This document shows, one piece after another, positions 7,363-64,000 of a stretch of 64,000 bases of DNA. Position numbers and translations under genes: made by a program. The DNA lies in contig OZ316899.1 in assembly GCA_973895155.1 (NCBI GenBank), forward strand, positions 7,815,241-7,879,240. Reading direction: 5' to 3'. The notes under the pieces are model-generated. The model ran no database searches and was not told the DNA's origin. It was given only the letters and a program-made list of their open reading frames with translations. Within the stretch, counting starts at the first letter, position 1. Each line of letters begins with the position of its first letter. Origin of the DNA: Marsupella aquatica. Lineage: Eukaryota > Plantae > Marchantiophyta.

Positions 7363-7407
7363 TGGATTGGAGCAGATCGGAGGCTGCTCAGGTTTACTGG
7401 GGGAGGA

Positions 7408-8253: not shown

Positions 8254-8967
8254 GCGGCAAGGCCCACTAGTCCTAGGGAAGTTGGGGTTGAGGCTAGTGT
8301 CCCAAGAGGGAGAAAGCATTCCAAGAGGCGGGCCCGAGGGGATACCAATTTGTACAAGGCAGTGGTTATGGGTAGGTGGGGTGATTGTGAGTTCACTGGC
8401 AGACGTGTCCCTATCATCAAGGGCTGGGATCCTGAGACTCTTGGTTTGCCACAACAACTTTCCTACAGTGAGGTAGAGGTTTGGGGTAGACGTTGGGTTA
8501 TCAAACCTTCCACACTTGGGGAAAGACATGGCTATGGAGTTTTTTCTTGTGAGGACATCATTGTGGACGCCGAGAGTGGTAGAGGTGGACGCGGCCAAGA
8601 GGGGCCTACTTTGTTTCCTTATGGTGGACCCATCTACAAGAGAAGACATTGGAACATGATCCTTGCACAACACCCTGAGTGGAAGACTTATGCATTGGAT
8701 ATGGATACTTTTGATGGAAACACTAGAAGGTATAGTGAGCAGTGTGTCATAGATGGGGACCCCATACGGACTGGGAATATTGATGGTTTCATAAATAGTA
8801 CCATGGGGACTCGCCCTAAGCGTAGGCAACATTGTGAGTGGGTTTTCATTGAGGGTCCTCTGCCAGCACCTTATGGCCAGACATATCATCATGATCATTG
8901 CCTAGTTGTAGCGACGAGGACCATTAACTCAGGGGATGAGTCATTTACTCACTATGAGTGGGATTAG
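8254..8967 (+). CDS. SET-domain protein, 3' part (5' end cut off by the gypsy A insertion)
   Basis: SET motifs KPSTLG..HGYGVFS.EDI (GxG), PYGG (YxG), GNIDGFINS and VVATRTINSGDESFTHYEW. The frame is open from the LTR boundary at 8254. Confidence 0.75.
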   Translation, partial: AARPTSPREVGVEASVPRGRKHSKRRARGDTNLYKAVVMGRWGDCEFTGRRVPIIKGWDPETLGLPQQLSYSEVEVWGRRWVIKPSTLGERHGYGVFSCEDIIVDAESGRGGRGQEGPTLFPYGGPIYKRRHWNMILAQHPEWKTYALDMDTFDGNTRRYSEQCVIDGDPIRTGNIDGFINSTMGTRPKRRQHCEWVFIEGPLPAPYGQTYHHDHCLVVATRTINSGDESFTHYEWD

Positions 8968-9164
8968 GGTTAAGTTAAGGGTCATCGGTGGTATGTTGCA
9001 TATCAAATGACACTACATATGGCCTTTGGCCACATTTTGTATTTGCACCACAACCAATATTATTTCATTTTTGCACACCCCTAGCCCATTTTTGTGTGTG
9101 TTCTCTTTGCAATATAACTTTCAATTGTTTGCTTTGTTTTTAGAATGTGCAACCCTCTCCAAAT

Positions 9165-9682
9165 ATGTTACCACGGAGATTGAGAGCAACATATCAAGAA
9201 ATGGGTATGCCAGAAGAAGGACATGGATCAAAGTCACAATCCTCATCAAGGGATAGTGGAAGCAGTAACCCTGATGAAGAGGTACCTCGGACGGATGAAC
9301 AAGTAACCAATGACCAGGATAGAGCCATGGATGACTTTATGGTTGATTGGTTTGGTGTCGACAACCCTGGTGATGAAGTTAATGACCTTCCCAATGAAGG
9401 ACAGGTGCCCTCCATTGATCCACGCCCAAGAATACCCCTGAGGGACAACGCCAATGGGAAGAAGCAGAGGAACAAGCCCGAACACCTATCTATGAGGGTG
9501 CTCGTTTGAGTCGCCTTTCAGCCATCTTGGGGTTGATGAACCTACAGGCCAAACACAAGGCAAGCAATGCCTTGTTATTTGATATGTTTGCACTTTGCCA
9601 TGACCTTATGTTACCCACTGAGAATGTGTTGCCAGCAACTTGGAAGGAAACAAAGAGTGTTCTCTCATCTATTGACATGGAA
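9165..9682 (+). pseudogene. CACTA/En-Spm transposase (TnpD) N-terminal part, duplicate copy 1
   Basis: LSRLSAILGLMNLQAKHKASNALLFDMFALCHDLMLPTENVLPATWKETKSVLSSI(G)ME is the typical region ahead of Transposase_21; contains a frameshift. Confidence 0.75.
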
Positions 9683-9877
9683 GGGTATGACATGCATGAT
9701 AGTAAACAGGAAATAGGTACACTGGTACCAGCAAAACTTTACTGTTACCAGAAAAATGACAATGTAAAAATATTTCCTAAAAATCCACATTTTCCAAACA
9801 AAAAAATTGTCGACAACATTTTTTGGCTAGCTTTGGGCGCTAGCAAAAAAATAAATTTTTTTCAAAAACATTACCAC

Positions 9878-11001
9878 TATTCAGGGACATAGATCTCATG
9901 TGCCAACAAACTCACTACCTTCTATTCCATTTGGGAGTATGGGGGCTCCCTATATAGTACATGGCGTGGTGGTTATGTAACCACCTCTTGTCCCTATTCA
10001 CTAGGGTAAGTCTAGTTTACCGGGGTTAGGTTTATCACTTATAACACTCCCCCTTGGTTGGGTGATGAGTGTGTTCCAGCCAACCATATGATGGGGAAAG
10101 CTAACCCTATGGTCTATAGTCTGGCCCAATGTAGTATGGTCTCATTAAAACCATGCTTCCATCATGGAAAGAGTGCCACTACTATAACATAGGTTTGGGT
10201 CCAGTTATTGAATGTATGTCCTTATAGTGTGCAAAAAGGGTGCATAAGGGGAATTAAAGGGTGTAATCTCTATGTATGTGCCCGTTCATGTGTCTAAAGA
10301 CTCGTGGTCTGTGTTTATGTTTAAGGAGCTGTTTACGCTCCTACCCTAATCCTGCGGGCCACGGGTTGGACGCCTCCAGTTGTCGGTTTGTTGCTTTGGT
10401 GGGCTGCTGACATCGTTTGAATCTTCGTTCGTTCGGTAGTCGGTGCGGCCATGTCGGGAGGTCGTCGTTTGTGTGTTGGGATTAGTCAAGTCTCATCGGT
10501 TCTGCGTGATTCTCGATGGTTTGGGGTGGCGGATTGGGGGTAGCATGTGATGTTGGAGCTCCCATTGTATCAGTTTGATCGACAGTAATGGGTGTGCAGT
10601 TTGGGTAAGTTCCTCAATGGCCTGCGTCATTCTTTTCCTTGTAAAAGATGCCATACTTCGCGGTCCTATCTCGTATGCATGTTCGCGGTGTAGTGCTGGT
10701 GGGAGTGGTTTAGTGAACAAGTCCGCGCGGTTGTCTTTACTTGGAATCCATTGTACTTGGACCTGTTCGCCATGCTGTTCGTGAGTGAAAAAGAATTTGG
10801 GTGCTATGTGTTTGATTCTATCCCCTTTAATGAATCCCTGGACTATCTGCTCCACGCAGGGTCGGTTGTCTTCGTATATAGTTGTTGGTTTCTTTAGTTG
10901 CGCTCTGCCTGTGTGCAAGTGTATGTGGTTTATCAGGTTTCTTAGCCAAATGCTTTCCTTGGTGGCTTCGTAAAGTGCTATTATCTCGGCGTGATTTGAG
11001 G
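9878..11001 (-). mobile_element. Duplicated 3' end of the copia element (3' LTR 9878-10046, PPT, RNase H tail)
   Basis: Matches 12645-13768; IYEDN, RIKHI and ADLFTK motifs. Confidence 0.9.
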
Positions 11002-11020
11002 ACCTTAAGTCCTCGCGACA

Positions 11021-11734
11021 GCGGCAAGGCCCACTAGTCCTAGGGAAGTTGGGGTTGAGGCTAGTGTCCCAAGAGGGAGAAAGCATTCCAAGAGGCGGGC
11101 CCGAGGGGATACCAATTTGTACAAGGCAGTGGTTATGGGTAGGTGGGGTGATTGTGAGTTCACTGGCAGACGTGTCCCTATCATCAAGGGCTGGGATCCT
11201 GAGACTCTTGGTTTGCCACAACAACTTTCCTACAGTGAGGTAGAGGTTTGGGGTAGACGTTGGGTTATCAAACCTTCCACACTTGGGGAAAGACATGGCT
11301 ATGGAGTTTTTTCTTGTGAGGACATCATTGTGGACGCCGAGAGTGGTAGAGGTGGACGCGGCCAAGAGGGGCCTACTTTGTTTCCTTATGGTGGACCCAT
11401 CTACAAGAGAAGACATTGGAACATGATCCTTGCACAACACCCTGAGTGGAAGACTTATGCATTGGATATGGATACTTTTGATGGAAACACTAGAAGGTAT
11501 AGTGAGCAGTGTGTCATAGATGGGGACCCCATACGGACTGGGAATATTGATGGTTTCATAAATAGTACCATGGGGACTCGCCCTAAGCGTAGGCAACATT
11601 GTGAGTGGGTTTTCATTGAGGGTCCTCTGCCAGCACCTTATGGCCAGACATATCATCATGATCATTGCCTAGTTGTAGCGACGAGGACCATTAACTCAGG
11701 GGATGAGTCATTTACTCACTATGAGTGGGATTAG
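11021..11734 (+). CDS. SET-domain protein fragment, duplicate copy 2
   Basis: Translation identical to 8254-8967. Confidence 0.75.
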   Translation, partial: AARPTSPREVGVEASVPRGRKHSKRRARGDTNLYKAVVMGRWGDCEFTGRRVPIIKGWDPETLGLPQQLSYSEVEVWGRRWVIKPSTLGERHGYGVFSCEDIIVDAESGRGGRGQEGPTLFPYGGPIYKRRHWNMILAQHPEWKTYALDMDTFDGNTRRYSEQCVIDGDPIRTGNIDGFINSTMGTRPKRRQHCEWVFIEGPLPAPYGQTYHHDHCLVVATRTINSGDESFTHYEWD

Positions 11735-11931
11735 GGTTAAGTTAAGGGTCATCGGTGGTATGTTGCATATCAAATGACACTACATATGGCCTTTGGCCAC
11801 ATTTTGTATTTGCACCACAACCAATATTATTTCATTTTTGCACACCCCTAGCCCATTTTTGTGTGTGTTCTCTTTGCAATATAACTTTCAATTGTTTGCT
11901 TTGTTTTTAGAATGTGCAACCCTCTCCAAAT

Positions 11932-12449
11932 ATGTTACCACGGAGATTGAGAGCAACATATCAAGAAATGGGTATGCCAGAAGAAGGACATGGATCAAAG
12001 TCACAATCCTCATCAAGGGATAGTGGAAGCAGTAACCCTGATGAAGAGGTACCTCGGACGGATGAACAAGTAACCAATGACCAGGATAGAGCCATGGATG
12101 ACTTTATGGTTGATTGGTTTGGTGTCGACAACCCTGGTGATGAAGTTAATGACCTTCCCAATGAAGGACAGGTGCCCTCCATTGATCCACGCCCAAGAAT
12201 ACCCCTGAGGGACAACGCCAATGGGAAGAAGCAGAGGAACAAGCCCGAACACCTATCTATGAGGGTGCTCGTTTGAGTCGCCTTTCAGCCATCTTGGGGT
12301 TGATGAACCTACAGGCCAAACACAAGGCAAGCAATGCCTTGTTATTTGATATGTTTGCACTTTGCCATGACCTTATGTTACCCACTGAGAATGTGTTGCC
12401 AGCAACTTGGAAGGAAACAAAGAGTGTTCTCTCATCTATTGACATGGAA
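11932..12449 (+). pseudogene. CACTA transposase N-terminal part, copy 2; continues at 32079
   Basis: Ends ...SSI-(G)ME; after the nested inserts are removed it joins ME-YHIVHTCVNDC at 32079. Confidence 0.78.
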
Positions 12450-13259
12450 GGGTATGACATGCATGATAGTAAACAGGAAATAGGTACACTGGTACCAGCA
12501 AAACTTTACTGTTACCAGAAAAATGACAATGTAAAAATATTTCCTAAAAATCCACATTTTCCAAACAAAAAAATTGTCGACAACATTTTTTGGCTAGCTT
12601 TGGGCGCTAGCAAAAAAATAAATTTTTTTCAAAAACATTACCACTATTCAGGGACATAGATCTCATGTGCCAACAAACTCACTACCTTCTATTCCATTTG
12701 GGAGTATGGGGGCTCCCTATATAGTACATGGCGTGGTGGTTATGTAACCACCTCTTGTCCCTATTCACTAGGGTAAGTCTAGTTTACCGGGGTTAGGTTT
12801 ATCACTTATAACACTCCCCCTTGGTTGGGTGATGAGTGTGTTCCAGCCAACCATATGATGGGGAAAGCTAACCCTATGGTCTATAGTCTGGCCCAATGTA
12901 GTATGGTCTCATTAAAACCATGCTTCCATCATGGAAAGAGTGCCACTACTATAACATAGGTTTGGGTCCAGTTATTGAATGTATGTCCTTATAGTGTGCA
13001 AAAAGGGTGCATAAGGGGAATTAAAGGGTGTAATCTCTATGTATGTGCCCGTTCATGTGTCTAAAGACTCGTGGTCTGTGTTTATGTTTAAGGAGCTGTT
13101 TACGCTCCTACCCTAATCCTGCGGGCCACGGGTTGGACGCCTCCAGTTGTCGGTTTGTTGCTTTGGTGGGCTGCTGACATCGTTTGAATCTTCGTTCGTT
13201 CGGTAGTCGGTGCGGCCATGTCGGGAGGTCGTCGTTTGTGTGTTGGGATTAGTCAAGTC

Positions 13260-16200
13260 TCATCGGTTCTGCGTGATTCTCGATGGTTTGGGGTGGCGGA
13301 TTGGGGGTAGCATGTGATGTTGGAGCTCCCATTGTATCAGTTTGATCGACAGTAATGGGTGTGCAGTTTGGGTAAGTTCCTCAATGGCCTGCGTCATTCT
13401 TTTCCTTGTAAAAGATGCCATACTTCGCAGTCCTATCTCGTATGCATGTTCGCGGTGTAGTGCTGGTGGGAGTGGTTTAGTGAACAAGTCCGCGCGGTTG
13501 TCTTTACTTGGAATCCATTGTACTTGGACCTGTTCGCCATGCTGTTCGTGAGTGAAAAAGAATTTGGGTGCTATGTGTTTGATTCTATCCCCTTTAATGA
13601 ATCCCTGGACTATCTGCTCCACGCAGGGTCGGTTGTCTTCGTATATAGTTGTTGGTTTCTTTAGTTGCGCTCTGCCTGTGTGCAAGTGTATGTGGTTTAT
13701 CAGGTTTCTTAGCCAAATGCTTTCCTTGGTGGCTTCGTAAAGTGCTATTATCTCGGCGTGATTTGAGGAGGTTGCTGTGAGCGATTGTTTCCTGCTTTTC
13801 CAAGAGATCACCATGCCACCTTGTAGGAAGACATATCCTGTTTGGGATTTCGCATCGTTAGGGTCTGAGAGGTAGCCCACGTCCGCGTAGCCGGTCAACA
13901 TGTTTTCTGAGTTCTTGGGGAAGAATAGCCCCATGTCCATTGTGCCGTGCAGGTATTGGAATACCCTTTTTACTCCATTCCAATGTCGGATTGTGGGGTT
14001 GGAGCTATGTCGAGCGAGTAGATTGACGGCAAAAGCAATGTCGGGGCGTGACTGTGTCGCCAGGTACATCAGGGCCCTGATGGCTGAGAGGTATGGCTTC
14101 TCGGGGCCAAGAACCTCCTCTGTCTCTACCCATTTTTTAAAGGTGTCCCTTGTGGGGTCTGAGGATCTCAGGTCCATGGGGGTGCTGACCGGGTGGGCGG
14201 ATGCCATGTTGAATTTCCGTAGCGCCTTTTCGGTATAAGTTGATTGGTTGATCAGGATTCCCTGTTGCAAGTAGTTGAATTGTAATCCCAGGCAATAGCT
14301 AGGCTTCCCGATGTCCCTCATCTCAAAAGTCTTCTTCAAGATTTTGATTGTCTTTTGCATTATCGTTTGCTGTGCCAAAGATGTTTATGTCATCTACGTA
14401 AATTGCGATGATGACAAATTCATCTGCCTCCCGTTTGAGGAACAAACAAGGGGCAATGTCGTCAGTATTGAAGTTCAGTGCGAGCATTTAAGCTTTAAAT
14501 CGTTTGTACCAGGTGCGTCCGCTCTATTTTAATCCGTACATTGAGCGTAGGACTTGGACTGCGAGTTCTCTTTTGACTCGTTTTGGCTGTGTAGCAGCGG
14601 TGTTCGGTCGGAGGAGCGTTTGTTTCCTGAGGTCGGATGTGTGAAGCACATCCTTTGGTGTCGGTACTGCAGGTTCGAGCTCGCTCGTCATTTTGTCCAA
14701 ATCGCCTGTAGGGCCGGTTTGGGTTAGGCCCGGTTGTAGACCGCGGTCTATGGTACCATTCTTCTCCCCCCCAATGTGGAACCTTATTCTTTTGATCAGT
14801 TCCGGGGGTGCCTTCATGTATATTGTGGTATGTAGGATACCATATAGGTAGGTTATGATCACGTCTAGCGTGTACATGATGAGCTTGTGCAGGAGTGTAA
14901 ATGCAATGAGGTACCGGTATGTTATGGAATCCATCACTGAGGAGTATGTTTGGTCGAAGTACCGGCCGGGAATTTGGGTGTAGCCCTTTGCTACCAAGCA
15001 AGCTTTGTATCTGATTACCTCTCCCTTTGCATTTTGTTTCCTCAAGAAAGTGAAATTATATCCCATAAGGTGTGTCCCTGCGGGTGCAGGGATTACGGGT
15101 CCGAAGATGTTTCGTTTTATCAGGGAGTCTAATTCGGAGTTTATGGCCAGCTCCCATTGATGCCAGTCTGGTTGAGATTGGGCCTCTGCTATTGTAATGG
15201 GGTCGGGGGTTTCGGTGGTTATCTCCTCAGAGATATGGAACGCAAAGTGGTCATTGATTTGTGTTGTATTTCGCTGCATCATTTGTCCAATGTGTATGTA
15301 GCTGATCATTATTTCCTCGTTTGCTATATCCCTTGGAGGGGGTGATCTTCGTGCAGGGGTGGCCGCAGGTGCTGGTGATGCGCTGCACGGTGGTCGCGGG
15401 TGCGTATCCTTGGAGCCTAGGGGTCGACCCCGTTTTGCCTTAGGTGCGGCTGCCGTTGCCTGTGGGGCTGTCCGTGAAATTCTTGTGGGTATATTTGCTG
15501 CCTCCGTGTGTGACCGTGTGACTGCAGCTGCATCGTTGAAAGAGTCATGTAAGTTTGTGAGCATTTGCTGTAAATGGAGGACCCTTTGTACTCCTTGGTC
15601 TGCTTCTCTGGTCCGGTGGTCATCAGTGATTGGTTTTGTGGGAAGCCATTGTAGTTCTTGTGCTTTGACATGTCCGCTTCTAGCAGTGTCTTTGGCGAGA
15701 GTTGGGAATTCATCTTCAAAGAATTGGCAGTCTTGGAACCTTGCTTTAAATACGTCTGCTGTCATAGGTTCCAAGTACCTGATGATAGAACGTGAGTCTA
15801 GTCCCACGTAGATGCCTCGTTGTCTCTAGGGTCCCATTTTGGTCCGTTTGGGGCCGAGTATTGGGACCAGGACCAGGCATCCGAATGTTCAGTGATGGGT
15901 GATGTCCGGTGGCATTCCGTATGCCAAAAAGTGAGGGGTTTGGGTGTTGAAGGAGGATGGCCTTATTCTTAGGAGGGCGGCAGCGTGCAGGACAACATGT
16001 CCCCATGCTGAGGCTGGTAAGTTGGATTGCATTAGCAGTGGCCTGGCGCGGATATCATTGAAGCTGATTAGGTTCCTTGTGGCCCTTGGTGCGTAGATTG
16101 CTGAGTTGATGTAGATTGTAGTCCCTTTTGGAAATCTGACTCTGGCCGGGCCGTAGCCTTCCTCTATGTGGTTAGGTCCTGTTATCGTTGTCATGGATCT

Positions 16201-17220: not shown

Positions 17221-17577
17221 TGTGACGCCGCCGGTACGGCGGTTAATGAGTGATTCGGTCTAACTGCGCTTAGCACGCGCGTTAGGAGTGTCTTAGGCCG
17301 CTATTATTAGCATAACGATAGTATTTAGGTAATCATTATGGGTAGGACATCATTAGGCAATAAGGGGGAATTCAGGTTCGGACTGGCGGCGGGTCGCTAT
17401 TCGCACACCCAGGTTACGAGCGTGGAGGGGCCCCTCCCTCGGGTCCGTATAACGTACTTAAGAAGCGGCCACTGACACGCGCTGACTCGGACCGGCGGAG
17501 TGGCCGGTACACCACAAGCGTGAGCGGTTCAGCCTATGGGCGTCGAGGAGACGTCGGGGGATCGACAAGCCCTCAAG

Positions 17578-17590
17578 GTATAAAAGGGGA
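17578..17590 (+). promoter_or_regulatory. Putative TATA box for the LTR-encoded ORF
   Basis: GTATAAAAGGGGA ~108 bp upstream of ATG 17687; conserved at 27578 and in copy B2 (~53270-53281, minus strand). Confidence 0.55.
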
Positions 17591-17686
17591 GCCAACCCTT
17601 TGTAGTGCACCAGTTCATCAGTCCACGCACCAGCTTCGACCCCAGCTCTCTCGTTCGCTCTAAGTCACCACTACTATCTCCTCTGA

Positions 17687-20346: not shown

Positions 20347-21365
20347 CAGCGGAGTAGGAATAGATTAGGATTAGGACTGGCTTAGTCAGGCTCTTGGGAC
20401 AGGCACCTGCCTTAGGTACAGCAGCGCTGCCATGCTGTCCAGCCTGCGTAGATTAGGATCTTCTAATAAGACACAACCGTTTTCCGGCCTGACTGTCAGC
20501 TTAGTTAGGACCTTAGTCAGCGAATCTTCGGCGAGAGGACACCCCGTCCCTCATCCCTTAGTATTTAGTGCACCCCTCGGTAGAGGCAGGGGGGGTTTTT
20601 AGTTGCAGAGTTGGACGTCCGCGGTATGTGCGGGGAGTCCCGACCTCTGGGAATGAAAGAGTACCGAGGGGAGGGGGTAGGACTAAGCTTGCCGGGCGAG
20701 TGCGGAGCCGGGCTCCGTTGTAGTGTGCACCCTTGGCCTTGAACCTGTTCATTCCGGGGCTGTCGGGTCAACTAAGTGTACGCATATGTTCCCTTTGTAG
20801 TAAAATCCTTTCCCATCATTTTCCTTCGTGTAAATCGAGATTGTATGCATGTGCGCGTGTATGTGTGTGGTTTCTCGTATATGGGTGGTAGCGCCAGGCC
20901 GAACGCACTACCCGAGACGTGCACAGGGTGCAGCCTGCGGGTAAGTGGTTGCTAGCACGGGTTGAGGACTTGTATCATCGAATCCGGATCGAAGGCGGAC
21001 AACACGAAGGCTTAGAAGCCCTTAAGCCGGGGTCGATCCTGCTATCGACTAAGGTACGTTTCGGCGGCGGAACACAAACCATACCTAGGAGGTGTCCGTA
21101 TTTAGCAGTATGCGCACTTAGCGCTAGTTTACGAGAATAAGGTGCATTACGTGCTTCCCTTCCTGCCCGAACCCTCAGATTTACGAGGGATGTGCCCGTC
21201 TAAGCTGAAGTCTGAGTTAAGGCCGCAGCCGACGACGTGACATAGCCTTTGTTTTGGCGCTAGATGGAGGGGGCACTCTACATATCGTAGAGGGGAGACA
21301 TGTGCGTATTCACCTAGGCAGGATACATCAGGACGTAGTACTAACCATCGCATTTATATGAGTAA

Positions 21366-49636: not shown

Positions 49637-50535
49637 TGTCACGTCGTAGGCTTCGGCCTTAACTCAGACTTCAGCTTAGACGGGCACATCCCTCGTAAAT
49701 CTGAGGGTTCGGGCAGGAAGGGAAGCACGTAATGCACCTTATTCTCGTAAACTAGCGCTAAGTGCGCATACTGCTAAATATGAACACCTCCTAGGTATGG
49801 TTTGTGTTCCGCCGCCGGAACGTACCTTAGTCGATAGCAGGATCGACCCCGGCTTAAGGGCTTCTAAGCCTTCGTGCTGTCCGCCTTCGATCCGGATTCG
49901 ATGATACAGGTCCTCAACCCGTGCTCGCAACCACTTACCCGCAGGCTGCACCCTGTGCACGTCTCGGGTAGTGCGTTCGGCCTGGCGCTGCCACCCATAT
50001 ACGAGAAACCCACACACATATGCGCACACATGCATACAATCTCGATTTACACGAAGGAAAATGATGGGAAAGGATTTTACTACAAAGGGAACATATGCGT
50101 ACACTTAGTTGACACGACAGCCTTGGAATGCACAGGTTCAAGGCCGAGGGTGCACACTACAACGGAGCCCGGCTCCGCACTCGCCCGGCGAGCTTAGTCC
50201 TACCCCCTCCCCTTGGTACTCTGTCATTCCCAGAGGTCGGGACTCCCCGCATGTCCCACGGATGTCCGACTCTGAAACTAAAAACCCCCCCTCTGCCTCT
50301 ACCGAGGGGTGCACTAAATACTAAGAGCCGAGGAACGGGGTGTCCTCTCGCCAAAGATTCGCTGACTAAGGTCCTAACTAAGCTGACAGTCAGGACGGAA
50401 AACGGCTGTGTCTCATTAGAAGATCCTAATTTACGCAGGCTGGACAGCAGGGCAGCGCTGCTGTACCTAAGGCAGGTGCCTGTCCCAAGAGCCTGACTAA
50501 GCCAATCCTAATCCTAATCTATTCCTACTCCGCCG

Positions 50536-53172: not shown

Positions 53173-53605
53173 TCAGAGGAGATAGTAGTGGTGACCTAGA
53201 GAGAACGAGAGAGCTGGGGTCGAAGCTGGCGCGCGGACTGATGGACTGGTGCACTACAAAGGGTTGGCTCCCCTTTTATACTTTGAGGGCTTGTCGATCC
53301 CCGACGTCTCCTCGACGCCCATAGGTTGAACCGCTCACGCTTGTGGTGTACCGGCCACTCCGCCGGTCTGAGTCAACGTGCGTCAGTGGCCGCTTCCTTA
53401 AGTTCGTTATACGGACCCGAGGGAGGGGCCCCTCCACGCTCGTAACCCGGGTGTGCGAATAGCGACCCGCCGCCAGCCCGAACCTGAAGTCCCCCTTATT
53501 GCCTAATGATGTCCTACCCCTAATGATTACCTAAATACTATCGTTATGCTAATAATAGCGGCCTAAGACCCACCTAATGCGCGTGCCGAGCGCAGTTAGA
53601 CTGAA

Positions 53606-56600
53606 TCACTCATTAACCGCCGTACCGGCGGCGTCACATAGCTCCCTGCTTAATTGTGAAGCGTCCTCGCGAACATTGCTATCGGCGTCGTCATCTTGAT
53701 GGTGGTACTTTTTTACACGATCGTAGCTGATTCGCGTGGGGAGTAAATCGTCGGCATACGTCGCAAGCTCCAAAGATCCGTTTCGGTAGATCTGATTGAC
53801 AAGGAAGGGCCCCAACCACCGGGTATGCAGCTTCCCTGGAAACTGCATGTACCTACTATCGTACAGAAGGACTAGATCGCCTGCCACGACGTCGACCCTC
53901 CGTAGTCCTTTGTCGTGCTGCTTCTTCGAAGTTGCCTGTTTCTTCACGGTGTGTCGAGCTGCCAGTAGTCGTGCTTCTTCCAAGGCTTCAATCTGATAAG
54001 CTCGGTCTGACAGACTTTCAGATTCAAGTAAGCGATCCCGAATGCTGACCCGTGGAGTGTGCACTTCAAATTCGACGGGCACCAACGAATGTTGGCCGAA
54101 CACCAGAAAGTACGGGCTGTGACTCGTAGTAGTTTTGTAAGCTAGATTATACGAGTACACCGCCGCGTACAACTTATCATCCCAATCCGTTTTGTGCGCA
54201 GCTACAGTTTTGTTGAGGATCTTCCCAATGATACCATTTGCTCTCTCCGCCATCCCGTTGGCTTTAGGATGATATGGGGTAGTCTTGCGGTGCTTGACTA
54301 GGTAACGCTCCGTAAGCTGGGCTACGGTGTCATTGAGGAAGTGGGTTCCACGGTCGCTTACGAATTCTAAGGGCGGTCCGAATCGGGTGAAAATCTGTTC
54401 GTATAAGAATCTGGCACTGGTTGCGGCGTCGTCCTTTACCGTAGCCCGCGCTTTGACCCATTTGGTGGAGTAATCAATAGCTAATAGGATGTACCTGCAC
54501 CTTCGCCTTCGGGTAACGGGAGTGAATGGTCCGATATAATCAATTCCCCATTTTTCGAATGGTGCCAATGGAAGCACAGATGTGAGCGGGTGATGATGAG
54601 CCCGCCTCGGGGCCCCCGCTCACTGACACAAGTCACAGCCCTTAATGAAGCGCTGTACATCCCGATGCAACGTAGACCACCAATACCCCGAGTCCAGAAT
54701 CTTTCGGGCTGTCGTAACTACCGCGAAATGGCCTCCAGCTTCTTCTTCATGCAGGGCCTGTATCACGATAAGTGTCTCCTTATACTCTAAGCAGTGTCGT
54801 AACTTTCCGTTAATACCTTCCTTATGTAGGTGACCCTGTATCATGACGTAAGGCCCGGCTTTCCGTAAAAACAGAGCGGCGGCCTCCTGATTGATGCCGT
54901 CAGGGATGCGGCCCGTTAAAAGGAAGGTGATTATTGAGCCGTACCATGTTGGTGTCCCTTCCCCCACGTGGAACAACTCCTCATCCGGAAAAATATCATC
55001 AATTGGCTGATCGACTGGTACGCCGTCCAGTCGTGAAAAGAAATCGGCATTGAGGTGTACCCTTCCTGGCCGAACCCAAACTTCGTAATTAAATTCCTGG
55101 AGAAGTAGCACCCACCGGGCTATCCGTCCTGTCACATCCGCTTTGTTGACCATGTACTTCAGGCTATCATGATCCGTGTGGAAAATGACCTTGTAGCCTA
55201 GCAGATAGTGTCGGAACTTTTTACACGAGTAGATTATTCCCAAAGCTTCTCGATCAGTGGGGGAATAATTCTTTTCGGCTGCAAATAGTTGACGGCTAGC
55301 GAAATAGATGGGGTGATCACGTCCATCCTCATCTAGCTGACTAAGTACGGATCCGATACAGAACCCTGACACATCGACATACACGTGGAACTCCTTATTC
55401 CAGTCTGGGGTGACCATGATAGGCGCGGTGGTGAGTCGTTTACGGAGTTCCTCAAAAGCAATCCGTCTTCGGGGTGTCTTCTCGACCGCTGCGTCCTTCT
55501 TCATCATCTCAGTTAAGGGCAACGCAATTTTAGCAAAGTCTTTAATGAACCGGCGGTAATACCCTACGCAGCCCAAGAAGGATCGTACTGCTTTTTGATC
55601 CAAGGGGAACACCACCGCCATCCAGGCCGCAACTTTCTCTTGGTCCACCTCAATGCCCCGTTTGGACACACGATGCCGGAGTAACACCCCCTCCTCTACC
55701 CCGAAGAAGCATTTGGCGGGATGTAGTTTGAGGTTAACATCTCGGCATCGTTGCAACGTTCGTCGTAGGTGTTCGGGGTGCATGGCAATGGTTCCGAAGA
55801 TGGCAAAGTCATCGATAAATATCTCCAAAAATTCCCGTAGGAAATCGTGGAAGATATTCATCATAAGGCACTGAAACATAGCCGGGGCGTTACACAGACC
55901 AAAAGGCATCCTCCGAAATGCGAACGTTCCCCACTCCGTAGTGAAAGTTGTTTTGAGCTGATCCGCGAGACGAATCCAGATTTGGTTATAACCTGAATAC
56001 CCGTCAAGAAATGTATAGATTTCATTTCGGGCCACCATATCTAGAACCATATCCGTGAATGGTAATGGGTAATGGTCTTTTCGGGTTGCATCATTCAGCT
56101 TACGGTAGTCCTGACAGATACGAATCTTAGGTTTTCCATCCGTACCTCCCTTCTTTGGTACAATGACAATGGGAGAGACCCAGTCGCTGGCCATTACCGG
56201 GTAAATGATATCGGCGGCGAGGAGACGATCAATTTCCTCCTTCACTAAGATGGAGTACCTCGGATTCATGCGACGTTGTCGCTGTCGTACCGCATGGGCT
56301 CCTAGGTTCAGATCGATTGTGTGTTCTCCCAACTCGGGGGAGACGCCTGTTAAATCATGATGACTCCATGCAAACACATCTTCATATTCCTTGAGCAAAG
56401 CTTGGATGGATTTTTCAGCCTTCCCCGTCAGAGCGTGGCCTAGGTTAAAAGATTTGTCCATCCCAATAGTGTACTTCCGGTAGTGCTCCTTCCTGATGAC
56501 TTCAACCTGGTTTCGCAGACTCGGGTCCAGGCTCGCGTCAAGCTCAGCTAACCGAACCCCTCCGTACATGGGTGGGACCGGGATTGGTCTCGGGATGGGG

Positions 56601-57784
56601 TTTACTTCCTCCAATTGCGGAATGGACGGATCCCATGAGACTCGCTTTTTATGTCTCGGTCTCGAGTTTTCGGCCTCAGGTGGTTGTTGGGCTGGTTCAT
56701 GGTTACGAGGCTCTGAAATGGAAGGAGTAGCCTCGGCTCCCTGCTTAGCTGGAGCCGTGTCCTCCGTCTCGACGAGTTGTTCGTGCGTTTCCTCATCCCC
56801 GACAGTAGATGTACTTGGGGTGGACTCAATGGCAGCCCTCGGGTAATTTAGGAGATGTGTTTCTCGGGTTGCTTCAACTCCGAAGACATCTTCCTCGGAT
56901 AGGGACGAGATGAGTTCGATCATATTGAGTTCCTCTTCCTCCGAGGTCTCCGAATCATATTCCTCGGGTCCTTGTGGGGTTTCTCCCTGATAATCGTCCA
57001 TTGCCCAGGATACCCGTACGGTGGGTTCCCCGAACCGTAGCTCCTTCTTTCCCCAATCCGTGACTACGCGGCCACCGTACAACCATGGCCTGCCCAGAAG
57101 AACCGGATAAGAGGAGGGACGAACCGGCCTCATGACTAAGAAGTTGAGATAGAACTCTACCCCTCCCACCAGAGTGAGCACTCGTGTGAGCGTGCCTAAT
57201 GGGAGGACCCTTGCCCCGTTTGCTAATCTGATAGCTCGGGCCGTGGGTTGATACGTGAGGTATCCTAACTTGACTGACGTTTCTTCAGTCATGATGTTGA
57301 CTCCCGCTCCTCCGTCTACAAGAACCATCTTGATGGTACAGTTATTAATTTTGATCGAGATGTCCGGCGCTCCAAGGTCCTCGCATATCATGTTGCAGTC
57401 CGCACTCCCAACTCGGGGTAGTCTCCTCCTTCGGCGACCCATGAGCAACTCCCTCAGTTGTCGTCTGTACTGTGGGTTGTTCTGCAGCAGTTGCCCCACC
57501 GTCGCTGTAACCGGGCAACTCTTCACGTCCTCCTTAATATCATAGTCCTCCTTTGTTTCTTTCGTTGGCTGCTGCTTGGCTTCCTCTTGTTTATCTTGCT
57601 TTTCTTGCTCCTGACGCCGGGCTGTCTCGGCTGCTTTGATGTCCTTATCGATTGCCTTCTGGTATTCCCAAGCTTCGTAAGCCTCCAGCTGTTTCTTTAC
57701 CAATTCTTCGATGCGGGGGAAAAACAGTTTCGGGTCGTCCCGTCGGTAGTCATCGTCCTTTTCCGGGGGTATATTTATCGCTGG
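53606..57784 (-). pseudogene. pol of B copy 2 (PR-RT-RH-IN), a single stop at 54620
   Basis: The 1027-aa and 323-aa ORFs are in frame. Confidence 0.94.
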
Positions 57785-58305
57785 ACTCTATGTGTTCTAA
57801 TGTTAACATGGTGAATGGTGAGCTTATAGAGTGAGTTCATTCCAAGTACACAATAAAACATGAATGGAATGTGTTATTTGTGCACAAGAGTGAGTTCATT
57901 CCAAGTAGTATAGTGGGGTCTTCATCACTCATTTCCAGTTGACATGAAAGACTTATACATACCCCACAAAGTGTCTACTTTAGTTGTTTTATAAACCCAC
58001 AAAGTATATTTAAATACTACCCTCCATAACCTTTTTAGTCTTTCCCAACGACTCACCATTGCAGCCCATAAAAGACTGAAAATGACTCACCAAAGCTACC
58101 CACACAAAGACTACAATAGACTGAAAATCCAGTCTATTAAATGACTTATAAACCAGTTCTATAAAGGACTCAGTTGATTATAGTAACAAAACATACGACT
58201 CGCAATCCTATAAAGGATTGGAGTCCTTCCCAGTCGTTTCCAAGTCCTATATGGTACTAAATAGTTGTTTAATGGGGTCTAAATACCCCCCGGTTTCTAC
58301 TTGTG
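57785..58305. mobile_element. Probable right end of a CACTA-type element (terminus reads CACAAGTAGAAACC on the minus strand) with subterminal repeats
   Basis: ...GGTTTCTACTTGTG at 58292-58305; repeated AAAGACT/AGTC motifs at ~57945-58250; abrupt switch to LTR sequence at 58306. Confidence 0.5.
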
Positions 58306-58546
58306 ATAGTTGCCTCCGGATCAGTTATACGGTCCGAGGCAGACAACCATAACGCGCCCCTAATCCGGTGGTACGTCACGTGCCGTGTTGCATGAACTCT
58401 ATTATTACTAAAACCTATCCTAAGCATCATGACTAGATAATTTTGTGTCGTTATGCTAATAACTACGGATTCCTAAGTCTACTTCATACGTGCGTAACAC
58501 AGATTAAGCCATATTACTCATTACCAGTCGTGTTGGCGGCGTCACA
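58306..58546 (-). mobile_element. 5' end of a diverged B-family LTR
   Basis: The minus strand starts TGTGACGCCGCC and shares TATTAGCATAACGA and CCGTATAAC with the first 240 bp of the B LTR. Confidence 0.75.
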
Positions 58547-58817
58547 GTTTGGTCAAGCTTAAGTTGTGAAAGGTAATCTTTACTGTGCCACCTTGGTTGG
58601 ATGAACAAAATCTGAAGTGACATTATGATTGATGTATTAGGTGATTCAAAGATAAACATAGACAAAGATGTGCCCAGCCTAGTGCCCCAGTGTCCATAGC
58701 CAATGAGGCATCAGGTAAGCTTATGCTTTAAATTCCCCTATATGAATGTTGTGAGACAATTCATTGGTTAACAGATTTAACCTGAATATTGTGGTGTGTT
58801 TATTGTTATTCATTTAG

Positions 58818-59520
58818 GATTAGCAGAAGCAAACATGGAGGATGTGGCAATGGCAAAGAAGAGGACAAAGGCTGTTCATAATGGTAAGTTGATAGTGACA
58901 ACTTTGTGGTTGGTGACATGTACATTTAGCACATGTGATTAGTGATTGACTTATGTTGGACAATGCACTGAATTGTAGTTGATGCAGAGTTGATAGACTC
59001 TCAACCAAGTGGGAGCGGGGTGAAGTGACGCCAAAACTTGGGAGCAACATTGGATGCAAGTAAGATTGTAGATGGTTCAATTGAAGCAAGTACAATGTTT
59101 GCAGATATTGAGATGATGTCGTAGGGAAATCCTACTACACAATCAGAAGTGTCAAATATGGATGCAGATTCTTTGAAGAAGAGTGTCCCCAATTCTTGAT
59201 CACCAACACAAACACTCGTGCCAAAGTGATGACTTGCAACCAAGGTATGAATAATGTCATGTATAAGCCACCCAGGAAAGCCAAGAAAAATAGCCAAGGT
59301 AAGGTGGAGGTGATAGCCACAACAGAGCTAGTCCATAATCTTCTATCATGGGAGGCTGACTCACAGGTATGTGTGGGTACATGCATTTTGCAACTGGATC
59401 ATACTAAATTCCATGGCAAAGTGGTCCCAAATGACCATGTAAAAGTGTTGTTGACTACAGTCATTGTATCTGATTATAATTTGCCATTTCCAAATAGAGC
59501 AGATGATCCACCTCAAGAAG
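58818..59520 (+). pseudogene. CACTA accessory gene (TnpA/Tnp1-like C-terminal domain) remnant, spliced
   Basis: VGTCILQLDHTKFHGKVVPNDHVKVLLTTVIVSDYNLPFP resembles the 'HG..lp....V.v..v....LP.P' domain of En/Spm ORF2. Exon-like segments at 58818-58883 and from ~58988. Confidence 0.55.
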
Positions 59521-59582
59521 TAATTGCAAATATCAACCTATTTATTAAAAGTGTATTTTCTTTTGTTCACAAATGAGTCTTG

Positions 59583-59660
59583 AAATGTACACTTTCATGT
59601 CCCCAAATGTACACTTCAAGACACCCAAATGTACACTTTTGTGTCTCTAAATGTACACTT
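59583..59660. repeat. ~22-bp tandem repeat, AAATGTACACTT core x4
   Basis: Directly visible. Confidence 0.9.
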
Positions 59661-59913
59661 TATAGGCCAAATCACATTAATATTATATTAATAAATAATA
59701 CATATTATATTATTTAATAACTCACATAGAAATGGAGGATAAAAACTTATAAAGTTATTTCATCCCCATTTAAGGACCAGATATTCTGTGAACAAAATAA
59801 CATCATTCCAAATAGATTATAAAATATCTTTATACAATTATCTGCAAATTTACATTGAATACGAACATGTTTCTAGTACTATCCAAGGGGCTTAACACAA
59901 GTCAATTAAATAT

Positions 59914-60950
59914 CTAAACCAAGTGCTCCCTACAATGTGTATTTGAGCATGTGCCCCTGTCTCCTTTCCTATCTACCCTATTGTCACGGTTGCAACTCAC
60001 TTTATTTTCAGGGAGTTGAAATCTGGTGGTGTTGTTCCTAATGGCTATAATCTCCCGCAAAAAGTGTCTGGGATTTTCTCTATATGGACCTGAATAGTCC
60101 TTTCCTAAAAATGATTTAGCAAGTGAGTTGACAAGTGCATTGTCAAGTTCCACCTCAGGACGTAAACTACATATACGGTGCTTTACATTCCAAGGGATCT
60201 CATTACTGTTGAGGTCCAACACACTATGTGTAAACTGTGACTTCCAAATTTTTGCTGCAAATCTCTTGCTAAGTTGATCATAAGTAATCTCATTTTTTGC
60301 CTTGTCTCTCTTCATGTGCAAAAGAGACCACTTTGGAGAGTTGAGAAGAAGATAGCATCGAATGTCACTTGCATGTGATAGTTTCTCAAGACATGGCCAA
60401 AGAATTGCTAGAAGAAAATTATCTCCACGATTGGCATGCGTGTAGGGCACTGGAAATAATCCGGTCATGTCTGGGTTGGCAAATGCCTTAAGGGGGGAGT
60501 CATCCACAAGGAGGGTGTTGGTTTCATCATATAGATTTCCAAATGCATTCCATACCACCTGAAAATCCTTCAGTAGCACATTTGCCTTTCCGTTTGTAAT
60601 GTCACGCCTTTGAATGCCTGTGTCAAAGGCTTCCACCTGTGTGAATACAAACTTAAGTTTCAACCGCTCCTCAACAGTGAACATCATGTTCAGCATTTTC
60701 ACTGTTCGTTCTACCCCAGCACAAGTCCAAATTGCAACGTCAAATCTGTCAAAAACCAACTTTAGAAACTCATGGAGCCCTGGTCGTTCTGTATACATGC
60801 GACTAATACCATTTTTTCTATCCCAATGCACTCCACTTGAGGTGACAATATTCCTGGATGTGCCCTTGCTTTGGAATTCAATAGAATCCCAAAGTATTTT
60901 ATTAAGGTCCAAAATCAGCAACTTCCGCTTGACGGGACCAGGTCTCGATT
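59914..60950 (-). CDS. FCP1/SCP (NIF) HAD-family phosphatase-like domain exon
   Basis: KRKLLILDLNKIL, RPGLHEFLKLVFDRFDVAIWTCA, LKDF..VW and NTLLVDDSPLKAFANP; intact frame; TGCAG acceptor at 60951. Confidence 0.85.
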
Positions 60951-61069
60951 CTGCAAGTGCACCAAACACCATTCTCAGAGAAAAGACCAAAAGTGAACTT
61001 TGGATTAGGATTGTCTCAGTCCAAAAATACAACACAATGGCTGACAAAAACGAAAATTAACCTACATAC

Positions 61070-61129
61070 CGTTTTTAGAAGCCTCACAATGTGTAGACGG
61101 ATATGGAGACTTTAATTGGTGAGCCCATT
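61070..61129 (-). CDS. 60-bp internal exon (phase 1-1) upstream of the FCP1-like exon
   Basis: CACAG acceptor at 61130; CG|GTATGT donor at 61069; splices in frame (..SKN-E-SRPG); no in-frame ATG upstream before a stop. Confidence 0.55.
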
Positions 61130-61189
61130 CTGTGAGACCGAGAAGTATTTTAGATTGATATGAATAAATAGAAAGTCAAAGGCTGAATT

Positions 61190-63562
61190 TCATTCCGAAA
61201 TAAGAGATCCGTATTCATCAATAATCATGTCAGCACCAAGCTCCTGTTGGATTTCAAAATTGACATCTGAAGTACTTTGTTCTACCCAATAAGGAGAAGT
61301 CCAAACAGGAGTTATGAACCCCAATTCTCCCCTCTTATACTCCTCCTTATTGAGAATTGAAGGAGCAGCTTCCAATGATATTTCTTGGCCTCGATTTGGC
61401 CCACTTTTCCACACGTAACATCGTGCGTCGCGTTCCAATGACCTCCATCCAGTTGATCCAACTCTATTCCCTTTCTTTTTTGAGAACGGAAGGACAACAG
61501 GACTCCTCGAGTGTGAACGAACGAACACCAATTTGTCATCAGAAGCTGAAAAGAGTGTGTCAGGACAAGTTGAAGCACCTGCCTGGTTGTCAGCAGCCGT
61601 TGATTCATTTCCTCCTGGATTGATGGGAATGTCAGGCAATCCGCCGGCTTCCCCACGAGTCAATTCGTTAGTTTCAGCTTCATTTGAATCTCCAAGCCTC
61701 GTTGCGCCTTCGTTGATCAGATTGGTTGAAGAAAGATGATCAAACATATCAACCCTTGCTCCTTCCAGTTGCTCCATCTGTCCTCCCGGCGTTGTTGGAT
61801 TGGGATCATCCTTGTCCAAGTTATCATCAACTTGAACTTCATGGGGCCCCGGAGGGATGTCATCTAAACCAGATGAACGGTTTGGTGCAAGTCCAATATC
61901 ATCATCTACATCGTAAGGCTCACCTTGACCAACACGGTCATCCAAATTTTTGACATATGCCTCCTCTGATGCCTCTACGCCTTTAGCCACTTTGTCAGCA
62001 ACATCTTCAGACTCAGAACCGTCGGATTCAACAGCGACAGCTACAGCCGCAATAGTGGTAGCCCATTGTCGAGAATTTTCAGCAAGTGATTCACAATGGG
62101 CTTTAAGTGAGGGAACTCTCTCGCAAAGGTAGGAAGCAAAAGCTTCCACAAAATGCCTCTCGGACTGAGAGTCACAATAAACAAAGCATTCCCTATCGCA
62201 AAAAAATGATGTCTTCATGACTTGGCCACCGGAGAAAAAATCTAGAACCAAATCTCCCGGTTCTGATAAGGATTCAATAATCCTTTGGATCATCCGCGTG
62301 GGTTTGGCATGAGGATTAACCCATCCTCCGCGACTACCAACTGTCTCAAATCGAGGGGCCATATTCATAATCTTGACGGCCTCTTCCGGGTCCAAAACCA
62401 CTTTTAGGTCGTCGTTTTGTGTCCCCTCATCTGATTCCTTAGCTTTCCCCTTTCCCTTGTCGATCTTGCATACTTCATAATCAACATCCTTTGAAGTATA
62501 CAAGAATTTTGGCTTTGGATAGTTGGGCTTGAAAACTTCATTCCAATTGACGTCTTCATCTCGAGAAATCCCTGCAAAGATAACTTCTTCAATCCCTCCA
62601 CCCCAACATGAGTCATGAGGGTGCGGTTGATCATCTCGTGAATAACTCCCATACTCAATGTGAATGGTCAAAGCTTTCTCTTGTCCCAATTTACGAAGGG
62701 CACCATGGACATTCAGTGCAAGTTGTCCAGGATGAACTGTTATCGTCACCACAATCGTGGGATTTTGTGGAAGCTCCACAATGTATTCAAAGAGAACAAG
62801 AATCTCTGCTTCAGTCCACTATTTTTGTGGAAGCCGGCTAAAATCAACAATGGCAAGAGGGCAGGTCGGAGGAGCTTCTTGCAATGACTCTGGATCAATG
62901 GTCTTCATGAGATTGTCGCTAAAAAATGTAACCCATGGTAGGGTCCGAGAACGTGATCCTCCGCCAAATCTCTGGCAGTATATATCATCTAGGCGGAATA
63001 CCAATGCCGTCGGCAAGATTGCGCTCTCCCGCGTATGATTTGGCTTTAAAAGGTTGGCAAGATAGACCTCGCCAGCGGCTCTTCGACACCTGCTGAACTC
63101 TGAATCAATTGCTAGCGTAGGAAGAACCTCAACTACTTTCCTCCAATTAGTATTTGTCGGGAAATTCACCGCATCCTTGGTGCAATAGTAGTCTTCAATA
63201 AGGGACTTGAGTTTCCGCACGATCTTCACATCTTTGGCCAACTCCTCTATAGATGGCATGTCTGATTTATTAGAGGCATCTTTCTTTAGCAATACCTTTC
63301 CTGACTTCACCCGCGTCAGTATTCTTGTGATGTCTCGTTGTGAGATCAACTCACCATCAAAACAATGAAACATGGCAACAGTAATTGCTTTTTCAGACTT
63401 CTCATTTCCTTCTACACCAGCTCCATCGGGAAGTTTCCCATCCAACCACAATTGGCATACCAAACTCCATAAATCAAAAAGAGCATTGTCGGCAAACAGT
63501 AACCAGTAGACATTACGACAATCTTTCCTTCCCATGGTCATTCTTGCAAGAGCCAACCAATC
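61190..63562 (-). pseudogene. Large exon encoding a beta-class N4C/N6A DNA methyltransferase-like fold plus acidic linker; one in-frame TAG at 62819-62821
   Basis: NPHAKPTRMIQRIIESLSEPGDLVLDFFSGG matches motifs X-I (HP..KP...l.r.i...s.pGD.VLDPF.GSG). ORFs 62819-63556 and 61190-62779 are in the same frame. TGTAG acceptor at ~63563. Confidence 0.7.
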
Positions 63563-63625
63563 CTACAATTGCAAAGGAAAGTCTGTTAGTTCTCCATAAC
63601 TCAATTGTTTGAAAGCACTCAGGTG

Positions 63626-63975
63626 CGGACTGAGACCATCCCAGTCCAACACAGAACTAGACAGTATCAGTGGAAATATTATATTGAATGTGCATGATTT
63701 AGTTTGGACTAGGACCATCCCAATCCAAAACAAAACTAGACGGTATCAGTGGAGAAATATTCTACTGAATGTGCATGAATCCATTTGGACTGGGACCATC
63801 CCAGTCCAACACAAAACTAGACAATATCAGTGGAAATAGTCTATTGAATGTGCATGAATCCATTTGGACTGGGACCATCCCAGTCCAACACAAAACTAGA
63901 CGATATCAGTGGAAATATTCTACTGAATGTGAATGTATCCATTTGGACTCGGACCATCTCAATCCAAAGCAAACT
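63626..63975. repeat. 79-bp tandem repeat (~4.4 copies) with an internal hairpin, probably intronic
   Basis: Units start at 63626, 63705, 63786, 63865 and 63944; each carries TGGACTGGGA-CCA-TCCCAGTCCA or a variant. Confidence 0.92.
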
Positions 63976-64000
63976 TGAAGCTTTGTGGTCAAAGACTACC

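Follow-up and report, generated by a model that had tools for sequence, protein, structure and literature searches.

A 64,000-nucleotide stretch of the genome of the liverwort Marsupella aquatica (GenBank assembly GCA_973895155.1, contig OZ316899.1, forward-strand positions 7,815,241 to 7,879,240), hereafter called the window, was analysed by self-comparison (self-BLAST), Pfam domain scans, and inspection of junction sequences. Self-comparison and domain scans indicated that nested transposons fill the entire window. Two components of this nest are considered here: a plus-strand SET-like open reading frame (ORF) followed by the TnpD transposase of a CACTA element, and a minus-strand gene that encodes a methyltransferase-like domain and a NIF/FCP1-homology domain (the MT/NIF gene). 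A preliminary description of the same DNA had proposed that positions 8254-64000 might be the backbone of one giant CACTA transposon with SET and the MT/NIF gene as cargo. All coordinates refer to the window unless a locus is named, and those of the annotated features are collected in Table 1.

The SET-like ORF is severed at its 5' end by the end of a long terminal repeat (LTR) at 8253/8254, and the window copy lacks both the zinc-finger exon found upstream of SET in relatives and the 5' part of the element. Against the Pfam SET family (PF00856) it scored E=0.022 and 15.6 bits, which is below the 22.4-bit cut-off, and 19 of 24 aligned relatives matched the family with a best value of E=7.5e-8. 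The ORF was 78% identical in amino acids and 83% in DNA to its relative in Calypogeia fissa, and 66% identical in amino acids to those of Sphagnum. Relatives at 60-84% identity were present in Calypogeia fissa, five Sphagnum species, and peat or moss metagenomes, with Sphagnum clusters of up to 360 members; no SET loci were found in viral contigs.

TnpD begins approximately 200 bp after SET (ORF 9144-9506, ATG at about 9165), and its start, MLPRRLRATY.EMGMP, is conserved in relatives. Its two halves are parted by a copia element, flanked by the 5-bp target site duplication (TSD) ACCAC, that itself contains a gypsy element with the TSD CTTCT. The second half carries Transposase_21, DUF4218, and DUF4216 matches; no Transposase_23/24 (TnpA-type) domain was found. 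The 3' end of the CACTA copy was sought with a terminal inverted repeat (TIR) pattern, by comparison with the 5' TIR of Calypogeia, and through the subterminal motif of Sphagnum copies, TCGCAAA; neither this end nor any other CACTA terminus was detected in the window, and the motif did not cluster anywhere in it. The order SET then TnpD on the plus strand, the nested LTR insertions, and the lack of both an evident ordinary host gene and a CACTA terminus had all been reported in the preliminary description and are confirmed here. The window SET/TnpD sequence is a truncated, insertion-broken copy of a SET-carrying CACTA family.

Two peculiarities of the window TnpD were also recorded. An additional 1.68 kb at 34310-35985, which is GC-rich, is absent from relatives, the corresponding gap in Sphagnum and Calypogeia TnpD being only 110-140 bp; neither inverted ends nor domain matches were found in it. 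Approximately 260 bp of additional sequence also lies at the ME/Y codon junction (9684-9877 plus 32009-32080), with ATGGAA on both sides, and the copia element was inserted there. This insert may be a small non-autonomous element.

Loci outside the source genome were examined with up to 10 kb of context on each side, and all linkage counts refer to such loci. SET and, downstream of it, TnpD were observed in this order and orientation in two loci of Calypogeia fissa (L006, L050) and one of Sphagnum jensenii (L007), and a scan of metagenome contigs yielded 38 further SET loci. Wherever the SET 3' end was complete and at least 450 bp of further DNA was available, TnpD followed on the same strand after 143-227 bp (20/20 loci). 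A scan of L006 and L007 for TIR pairs under a strict rule gave nothing, and the element ends emerged later, when many copies were aligned against L007. Complete copies delimited in this way in L007 and L038 have the inverted ends CACTACAAC... and ...GTAGTAGTG, also written CACTACAACAA... and ...TGTAGTAGTG. The complete Sphagnum elements are 10-12 kb long, with CACTAC... inverted ends and a 3-bp TSD, so that the TIRs and TSD proposed as a check in the preliminary description are present around SET-TnpD in L007 and L038. The gene order in complete copies is a divergent minus-strand ORF pair, the zinc-finger exon, SET, and TnpD with its conserved ATG, followed by approximately 0.8 kb of non-coding DNA between the TnpD stop and the 3' end. 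The divergent gene (two ORFs, approximately 325 amino acids; L007 5482-6528, L050 7393-8325, and L006 6897-7877, all on the minus strand) is 48-66% conserved between moss and liverwort, has no known domain, and is absent from the window copy. A CACTA terminus was also present at the 5' end of L050.

The motifs that define catalysis and S-adenosylmethionine (SAM) binding in SET proteins are GxG, YxG, NH(S/C)xxPN, and ELxF/YDY. In the bryophyte family, GYG (GxG), FPYGG (YxG), and ELFTHY (ELxxHY, with the catalytic Tyr) are conserved, and NH is replaced by a near-invariant NS. The zinc-finger exon upstream of SET (CxCxxC) is conserved in relatives. The ratio of non-synonymous to synonymous substitutions (dN/dS), a second check suggested earlier, was 0.18-0.29 for SET and comparable to that of TnpD segments; SET is, as judged from these ratios, evolving under purifying selection. 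Because of the 20/20 linkage, the position inside complete elements, and the purifying selection, SET belongs intrinsically to this bryophyte CACTA family as a gene under selection.

Two observations concern the age and spread of the family. CACTA coding regions were 77-83% identical in DNA between moss and liverworts (window, L006/L050, and L007), with synonymous divergence (dS) of 0.5-0.9 for SET and 1.2-2.1 for most TnpD segments. This seems low for the age of the moss/liverwort split, and horizontal transfer is hence a possibility. On one metagenome contig (L049, 2393-4554), a distant SET-like stretch (28% identity) is followed by TnpD-like stretches (37-47%) in a locus with few long ORFs, which suggests that the SET-TnpD pairing may be older than the present family.

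The MT/NIF gene was analysed as three ORFs that were each searched singly rather than merged into a spliced protein. ORF1 and ORF2 form a single frame broken by an in-frame TAG, and the frame is open in the homologue P0001. The preliminary description had called the gene spliced; the folds that it proposed stand, and no intron separates ORF1 from ORF2. The terminal stop of ORF2 (...DEYGS...) is common to relatives and the NIF ORF starts 136 nt later; NIF is therefore a separate ORF or exon. A splice acceptor (ttgtAG/GATTGG) precedes ORF1, and in L003, L010, and L011 an ORF that carries an SGQHSA motif, conserved among them, leads into the methylase-like gene from upstream; the window therefore holds the 3' part only, with upstream exons past position 64000. 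A ParB-like identity was considered for this upstream exon and set aside, as there was no Pfam or NCBIfam match and a profile search of solved structures gave spurious fimbrial matches only.

ORF2 matched PF01555 at 28.7 bits (cut-off 26.7) over a span of 29 residues only, and ORF3 matched Pfam NIF (PF03031) with E=2.2e-15 and 57.2 bits (cut-off 21.8). The fold of the first domain was predicted on the uninterrupted homologue L001:191-1651, for which the AlphaFold-type confidence score (pLDDT) was 85 and Foldseek returned a probability of 1.00, with M.MboIIA, M1.HpyAVI, CcrM, M.RsrI, and M.PvuII at the top (E ~3e-7). In the model, motif IV precedes motif I within a Rossmann-like methyltransferase fold, and the strands coincide with the motifs; a beta-class DNA amino-methyltransferase fold was thereby confirmed on this homologue. 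SAM-binding motif I (FxGxG) is kept in the family as D-F-F-S-G-G-Q, and in the window it falls in the ORF2 half of the domain. The catalytic motif IV, DPPY, is changed to D-F-[STA]-R throughout the family, and no member has the two prolines. The closest solved structure to the NIF ORF was UBLCP1. Its DxDxT motif reads D-L-N-K-I in the window; the second Asp was present in 0/16 relatives and the first was absent in 2/16, while the DDSP motif and a conserved Lys are retained in the family. TIM50 is an inactive relative of the FCP1/SCP phosphatases and acts as a binding module. By analogy, and because no member keeps the second Asp, the NIF domain is probably a binding module as well. The window copy, with its in-frame stop, is predicted to be pseudogenised.

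Tandem arrays flank the gene, one of 25-bp palindromes on its 5' side and one of 22-mers with a TGTACA core on its 3' side. The palindrome also occurs at 61000-61025 and 61795-61819, inside the gene region. The same 22-bp array is present at the same position in L010, the protein of which is only 41% identical. Both arrays look like protein-binding sites. The intergenic region between MT and NIF in L010 (5036-5225) contains 30- and 42-bp tandem repeats, positioned as is the palindrome at 61000-61025 but of other sequence.

A word-index search with MT ORF2 gave a single match, and an exhaustive profile search matched 157 representative clusters at the 50% identity level. Matches from named species were restricted to Riccia sorocarpa, in which 13 NIF paralogues lie on six chromosomes, and Calypogeia fissa; the rest came from metagenomes and raw-read assemblies. 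The order MT then NIF was retained in L001, L003, L010, and L011. No related loci were obtained with alignment A3 in metagenome contigs or viral contigs. Next to one Riccia sorocarpa paralogue, a minus-strand neighbour (L009, 1-1357) has Pfam DUF7869; a literature search on an FCP1/methylase transposon gene in bryophytes, or on DUF7869, found nothing useful. The MT/NIF gene is taken to be a separate, probably mobile, and probably non-catalytic module.

The association between the two gene groups was examined in both directions. MT or NIF was found in 0 of 41 SET loci, over 119 kb of sequence before SET and 107 kb after it, and SET or TnpD in 0 of nine MT/NIF loci (117 kb). The MT/NIF gene is absent from the complete Sphagnum CACTAs, which leave no room for it since they end approximately 0.8 kb after TnpD. 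Along the path that leads in the window from TnpD to MT/NIF, the CACTA 3' end is missing, the LTR elements are truncated and unrelated, and rearrangement has left two or more breakpoints. Positions 8253/8254, ~37150, and 57784/57785 are breakpoints rather than clean insertion sites, and the reading of 8254-64000 as a single backbone from which insertions need only be removed was not confirmed. The small spliced-looking gene at the far end of this path is the sole candidate for the TnpA-like remnant of the preliminary description; it had no Pfam match and no similarity to any related CACTA locus, and that assignment was not confirmed. On these four grounds (the two zero counts, the complete Sphagnum elements, the broken path, and the unsupported TnpA-like gene) a single giant element is not supported. 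The SET/TnpD CACTA copy and the MT/NIF gene are instead taken, with a probability of about 70%, to be two separate things in one transposon nest. Of the proposal that a CACTA family carries epigenetic cargo, the part concerning SET is thus upheld by linkage, TIRs, TSDs, and selection, and the part concerning the methylase/FCP1 gene is not; in the accessible loci outside the source genome the latter is multi-copy but not linked to this transposase.

Several observations weigh against this conclusion and the reading of SET on which it builds. The AlphaFold model of SET had a pLDDT of 36.8 and was unusable, and sequence searches of the Protein Data Bank returned no solved structure matching SET. 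The 3' end of the liverwort copies was not found, L006 being truncated and the 6 kb that follow TnpD in L050 showing no terminus; liverworts may therefore have a longer variant that includes additional genes. Calypogeia fissa, which has the CACTA family, also has an annotated MT homologue (P0006, CAM6104213.1). Lastly, the Riccia paralogues (L008, L009) share genic sequence only, which is compatible with a host gene family.

The alternative in which one CACTA extends from 8254 to past 64000 and carries SET, TnpD, a TnpA-like gene, and convergent MT/NIF cargo draws on the occurrence of all the genes in a single stretch of 56 kb, uninterrupted by any host gene, on SET being truly CACTA-borne, on the missing liverwort-type 3' end, and on the arrays that flank the MT/NIF gene in the manner of subterminal repeats. 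Giant Plavaka elements of red algae, of the same superfamily, moreover carry a PF01555+SET gene (bioRxiv 10.1101/2025.02.11.637652). Set against these are the absence of co-occurrence in the 41 and nine loci, complete Sphagnum elements of 10-12 kb that do without the MT/NIF gene, a TnpA-like gene that found no support, a path made of truncated LTR elements and breakpoints and not of clean insertions, and a subterminal motif that does not cluster in the window; such an element is considered very unlikely. That MT/NIF is a lineage-specifically expanded host gene family, with a dead duplicate left in heterochromatin in the window, would explain why the Riccia paralogues are annotated genes, why L008 and L009 are homologous only across the gene, and why the nine loci showed no transposase within 10 kb. 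It sits poorly with the limited set of named-species matches, the great diversity of the family with its long exons and few introns, a flanking array conserved between copies just 41% identical in protein, and the embedding of the window copy in transposons, and a host origin is therefore judged unlikely, although with some residual weight.

With regard to SET itself, it might be an N-terminal transposase domain joined to TnpD by splicing, a SETMAR-like fusion made by the element. Only ~150 bp separate the two, which lie on one strand; in gene model P0186, SET is spliced to TnpD; and SET is preceded by the zinc-finger exon, which we take to resemble the usual TnpD N-terminus, a resemblance that Pfam did not confirm. 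However, nearly all SET copies of mosses and liverworts share a stop immediately behind HYEW[DNS], a conserved ATG opens TnpD, and P0186 omits the SET C-terminus and is likely a prediction artefact, all of which makes a fusion quite improbable. CACTA elements of flowering plants often capture fragments of host genes, and the SET ORF could by this precedent be a passively captured fragment (a transduplicate) with no function for the element. Its presence at the same position in every testable copy of mosses and liverworts, with intact frames, low dN/dS, and conserved motifs, renders passive capture barely credible.

If SET-TnpD and MT/NIF are indeed separate, the following model can be proposed. 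The zinc-finger and SET product would be the accessory protein of the element, in the place that TnpA holds in En/Spm. It would methylate, or at least bind, chromatin proteins at the element's own copies and so might influence their transcription or silencing. MT/NIF would be a pseudo-enzyme module that binds DNA or SAM and belongs to a mobile element different from the SET-CACTA. It would serve to recognise its own arrays, without methylating or dephosphorylating any target, and its nearness to the CACTA copy would be the outcome of transposon pile-up. A bolder version, which is doubtful at present, is that MT/NIF and its upstream exon form a self-recognising accessory cassette of bryophyte transposons, similar to the PAGs of Plavaka. 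In such a cassette the dead methyltransferase fold would bind the 25-bp palindrome and TGTACA arrays, the dead phosphatase fold, of a type acting on the C-terminal domain (CTD), would dock on RNA polymerase II or chromatin, and the whole would move from one transposon family to another, longer liverwort variants of the SET-CACTA possibly among them.

Among known systems, En/Spm (CACTA, DTC) is similar in its TnpD-type transposase with Transposase_21, DUF4218, and DUF4216 and, as regards the complete relatives, in CACTA inverted ends, a 3-bp TSD, and a second element-encoded protein. It differs in that the second protein of the bryophyte family is zinc-finger plus SET and lies upstream of TnpD, that a divergent third gene is present, and that the window copy lacks both ends and any Transposase_23/24 domain. 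SETMAR also pairs SET with a transposase, but it is a host gene fused to a dead mariner; the bryophyte element, by contrast, itself carries SET as a separate ORF. The VANC proteins of VANDAL elements are likewise transposon-linked and aimed at the chromatin or DNA-methylation state, with no sequence relation. For MT/NIF, the beta-class N6-adenine/N4-cytosine methyltransferases (M.MboIIA, M1.HpyAVI, CcrM, M.RsrI, M.PvuII, and the bdelloid N4CMT) share the fold, the order of motifs IV and I, and F-x-G-x-G in the form F-F-S-G-G; they differ from it in having DPPY for D-F-[STA]-R and in lacking the long helical N-terminus, the acidic linker, and the adjacent NIF ORF. The FCP1/SCP phosphatases (UBLCP1, CTDNEP1, SCP1) and TIM50 share the NIF homology domain, the DDSP motif, and the conserved Lys, and the difference lies in DxDxT, which in the MT/NIF family reads D-x-[N/E/S]-[G/K]-x with the second Asp kept by no member.

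DNA transposons that encode their own SET protein, presumed to act on chromatin, are already known. SET genes on HarbingerS and MuDR elements of Phytophthora (oomycetes) have been described (Kojima and Jurka 2014, cited in PMC12730594), and SET captures in Helitrons have been reported (PMC12730594; bioRxiv 10.1101/2025.02.11.637652). Compared by description only, these differ from the present family in superfamily and host lineage, here CACTA and bryophytes. In red-algal giant Plavaka (EnSpm/CACTA), PAG2 (PF01555 + SET) and PAG3 (ParB + 2OG oxygenase) adjoin inverted-repeat tandem arrays, and these accessory genes are reported to move between transposon families (bioRxiv 10.1101/2025.02.11.637652). 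The likeness lies in the domain names (PF01555 and SET), the superfamily, and the arrays. In contrast to PAG2, SET and the PF01555-like domain occur here in separate genes that were not found together in any accessible locus, and the partner of the methylase-like domain is NIF/FCP1 instead of SET, with both catalytic motifs degenerate. No description of a SET-carrying bryophyte CACTA family was found in the searchable literature, a search that did not extend to Repbase. The SET-carrying CACTA is real and appears to be a new arrangement among already known SET-bearing DNA transposons.

Transposon-encoded chromatin modifiers are rare and show directly that epigenetic silencing is the object of an arms race. 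The SET-CACTA is a classical plant-type CACTA with a conserved SET gene, abundant in Sphagnum and also present in liverworts. With many copies, complete elements, and sequenced hosts, it offers a tractable system in which to ask whether a DNA transposon places histone marks on itself. The MT/NIF family, in which two enzyme folds, both without catalytic residues, lie between short repeat arrays, may represent a new kind of transposon accessory module.

Table 1. Coordinates of annotated features in the 64,000-nt window of Marsupella aquatica and of complete elements in two related loci (L007 and L038, in locus coordinates)
Feature	Position	Strand	Evidence or remark
SET-like ORF, 5'-truncated	8254-8964 (stop-to-stop 8242-8964)	+	Duplicate copy at 11021-11731
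TnpD, N-terminal part	9165-9877	+	Duplicate 11932-12644; collinear with TnpD of L006, L007, L050
TnpD, remainder	32004-36485	+	Collinear with L007, L050
Transposase_21	32342-33292	+	Pfam E=4.8e-34
DUF4218	33520-33876	+	Pfam E=4.3e-30
DUF4216	35973-36485	+	Pfam E=6.6e-8
TnpD 3' flank, ~0.7 kb, non-coding	36486-37150	+	Without recognisable CACTA terminus
Complete element, L007	3788-15625		Homology start 3787/3788, end ~15625; TSD AAT/AAT
Complete element, L038	~6123-16020		TSD ACA/ACA
Methylase-like/NIF gene, overall	59917-63562	-	22 kb from SET-TnpD copy
ORF1: helical N-terminal region and first half of methyltransferase-like domain	62822-63562	-	D-F-S-R replaces DPPY
In-frame TAG splitting methyltransferase-like domain	62819-62821	-	Sense codon in relatives
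ORF2: C-terminal half of methyltransferase-like domain, acidic linker, conserved C-terminal region ending DEYGS	61193-62818	-	
ORF3: NIF/FCP1-homology, then Cys-rich tail	59917-61056	-	
22-bp tandem array, core AAAGTGTACAWTT in gene orientation	59583-59661	-	~260-330 bp downstream of NIF stop
79-bp tandem array, 4.3 copies	63627-63997		25-bp palindrome (TTGGACTGGGACCATCCCAGTCCAA) per unit
Small spliced-looking gene, sole candidate for TnpA-like remnant	58836-59573	+	Sequence reading
Gypsy-type element	1372-8253	+	Its LTR end is 8253
Tandem duplication, 2768-bp unit	8235-11002 and 11002-13769		99.96% identical; self-BLAST, junction sequences
Ty1/copia, inserted in TnpD, not part of CACTA	9878-32003	-	RVT_2 matches, LTR pair, TSD
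Ty3/gypsy, nested in copia gag region, not part of CACTA	17221-31244	+	Gag, protease, reverse transcriptase, RNase H, integrase matches
Copia gag fragment, followed by unassigned sequence	After TnpD 3' flank (~37150)		
Gypsy with coiled-coil ORFs	41117-48393	-	
LTR fragment	48394-49636	-	
Second copy of large gypsy, without 5' LTR	49629-57784	-	
Region with small plus-strand gene, minus-strand methylase-like/NIF gene, and two tandem arrays	57785-64000		

The remainder of the window is made up of LTR elements and their fragments. The copia element that splits TnpD has 169-bp LTRs at 9878-10046 (second copy 12645-12813) and 31836-32003. The second copies of its LTR, of SET, and of the TnpD start arise from the 2768-bp tandem unit, which takes in the end of an LTR, SET, the N-terminal part of TnpD, and the 3' end of copia; at the junction of the two units, copia RNase H sequence abuts the final 19 bp of an LTR. 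This repeat reflects a very recent duplication or else an artefact of assembly.

The gypsy element nested in copia has 4-kb LTRs that are 97.6% identical. These hold long ORFs (approximately 430 and 350 amino acids; 18083-20346, 27687-30101, and 50818-52908 on the minus strand) that are open in all three LTR copies, gave only weak coiled-coil matches in Pfam, and are of a length judged unusual inside LTRs. The second, minus-strand copy of this gypsy ends abruptly within its gag region at 57784/57785, and just past the break, in 57828-57907, lie two copies of a 21-bp motif (AGAGTGAGTTCATTCCAAGTA) at a distance of 59 bp.

A 1.2-kb LTR-like segment is common to 7012-8253 and 48394-49636 (minus strand), the internal regions of the two elements differing in DNA, and 1372-1503 represents only the last 132 bp of it. 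No TSD was found around 1372-8253, and recombination between copies is therefore possible. No Pfam domains were detected in the ORFs of 37650-41116, nor in the coiled-coil ORFs at 41117-44710 and 1-1083. The last two, both on the minus strand, are copies of one unassigned protein family with a coiled-coil C-terminus; one copy lies downstream of a gypsy integrase, and the family may be an extra ORF of that retrotransposon.

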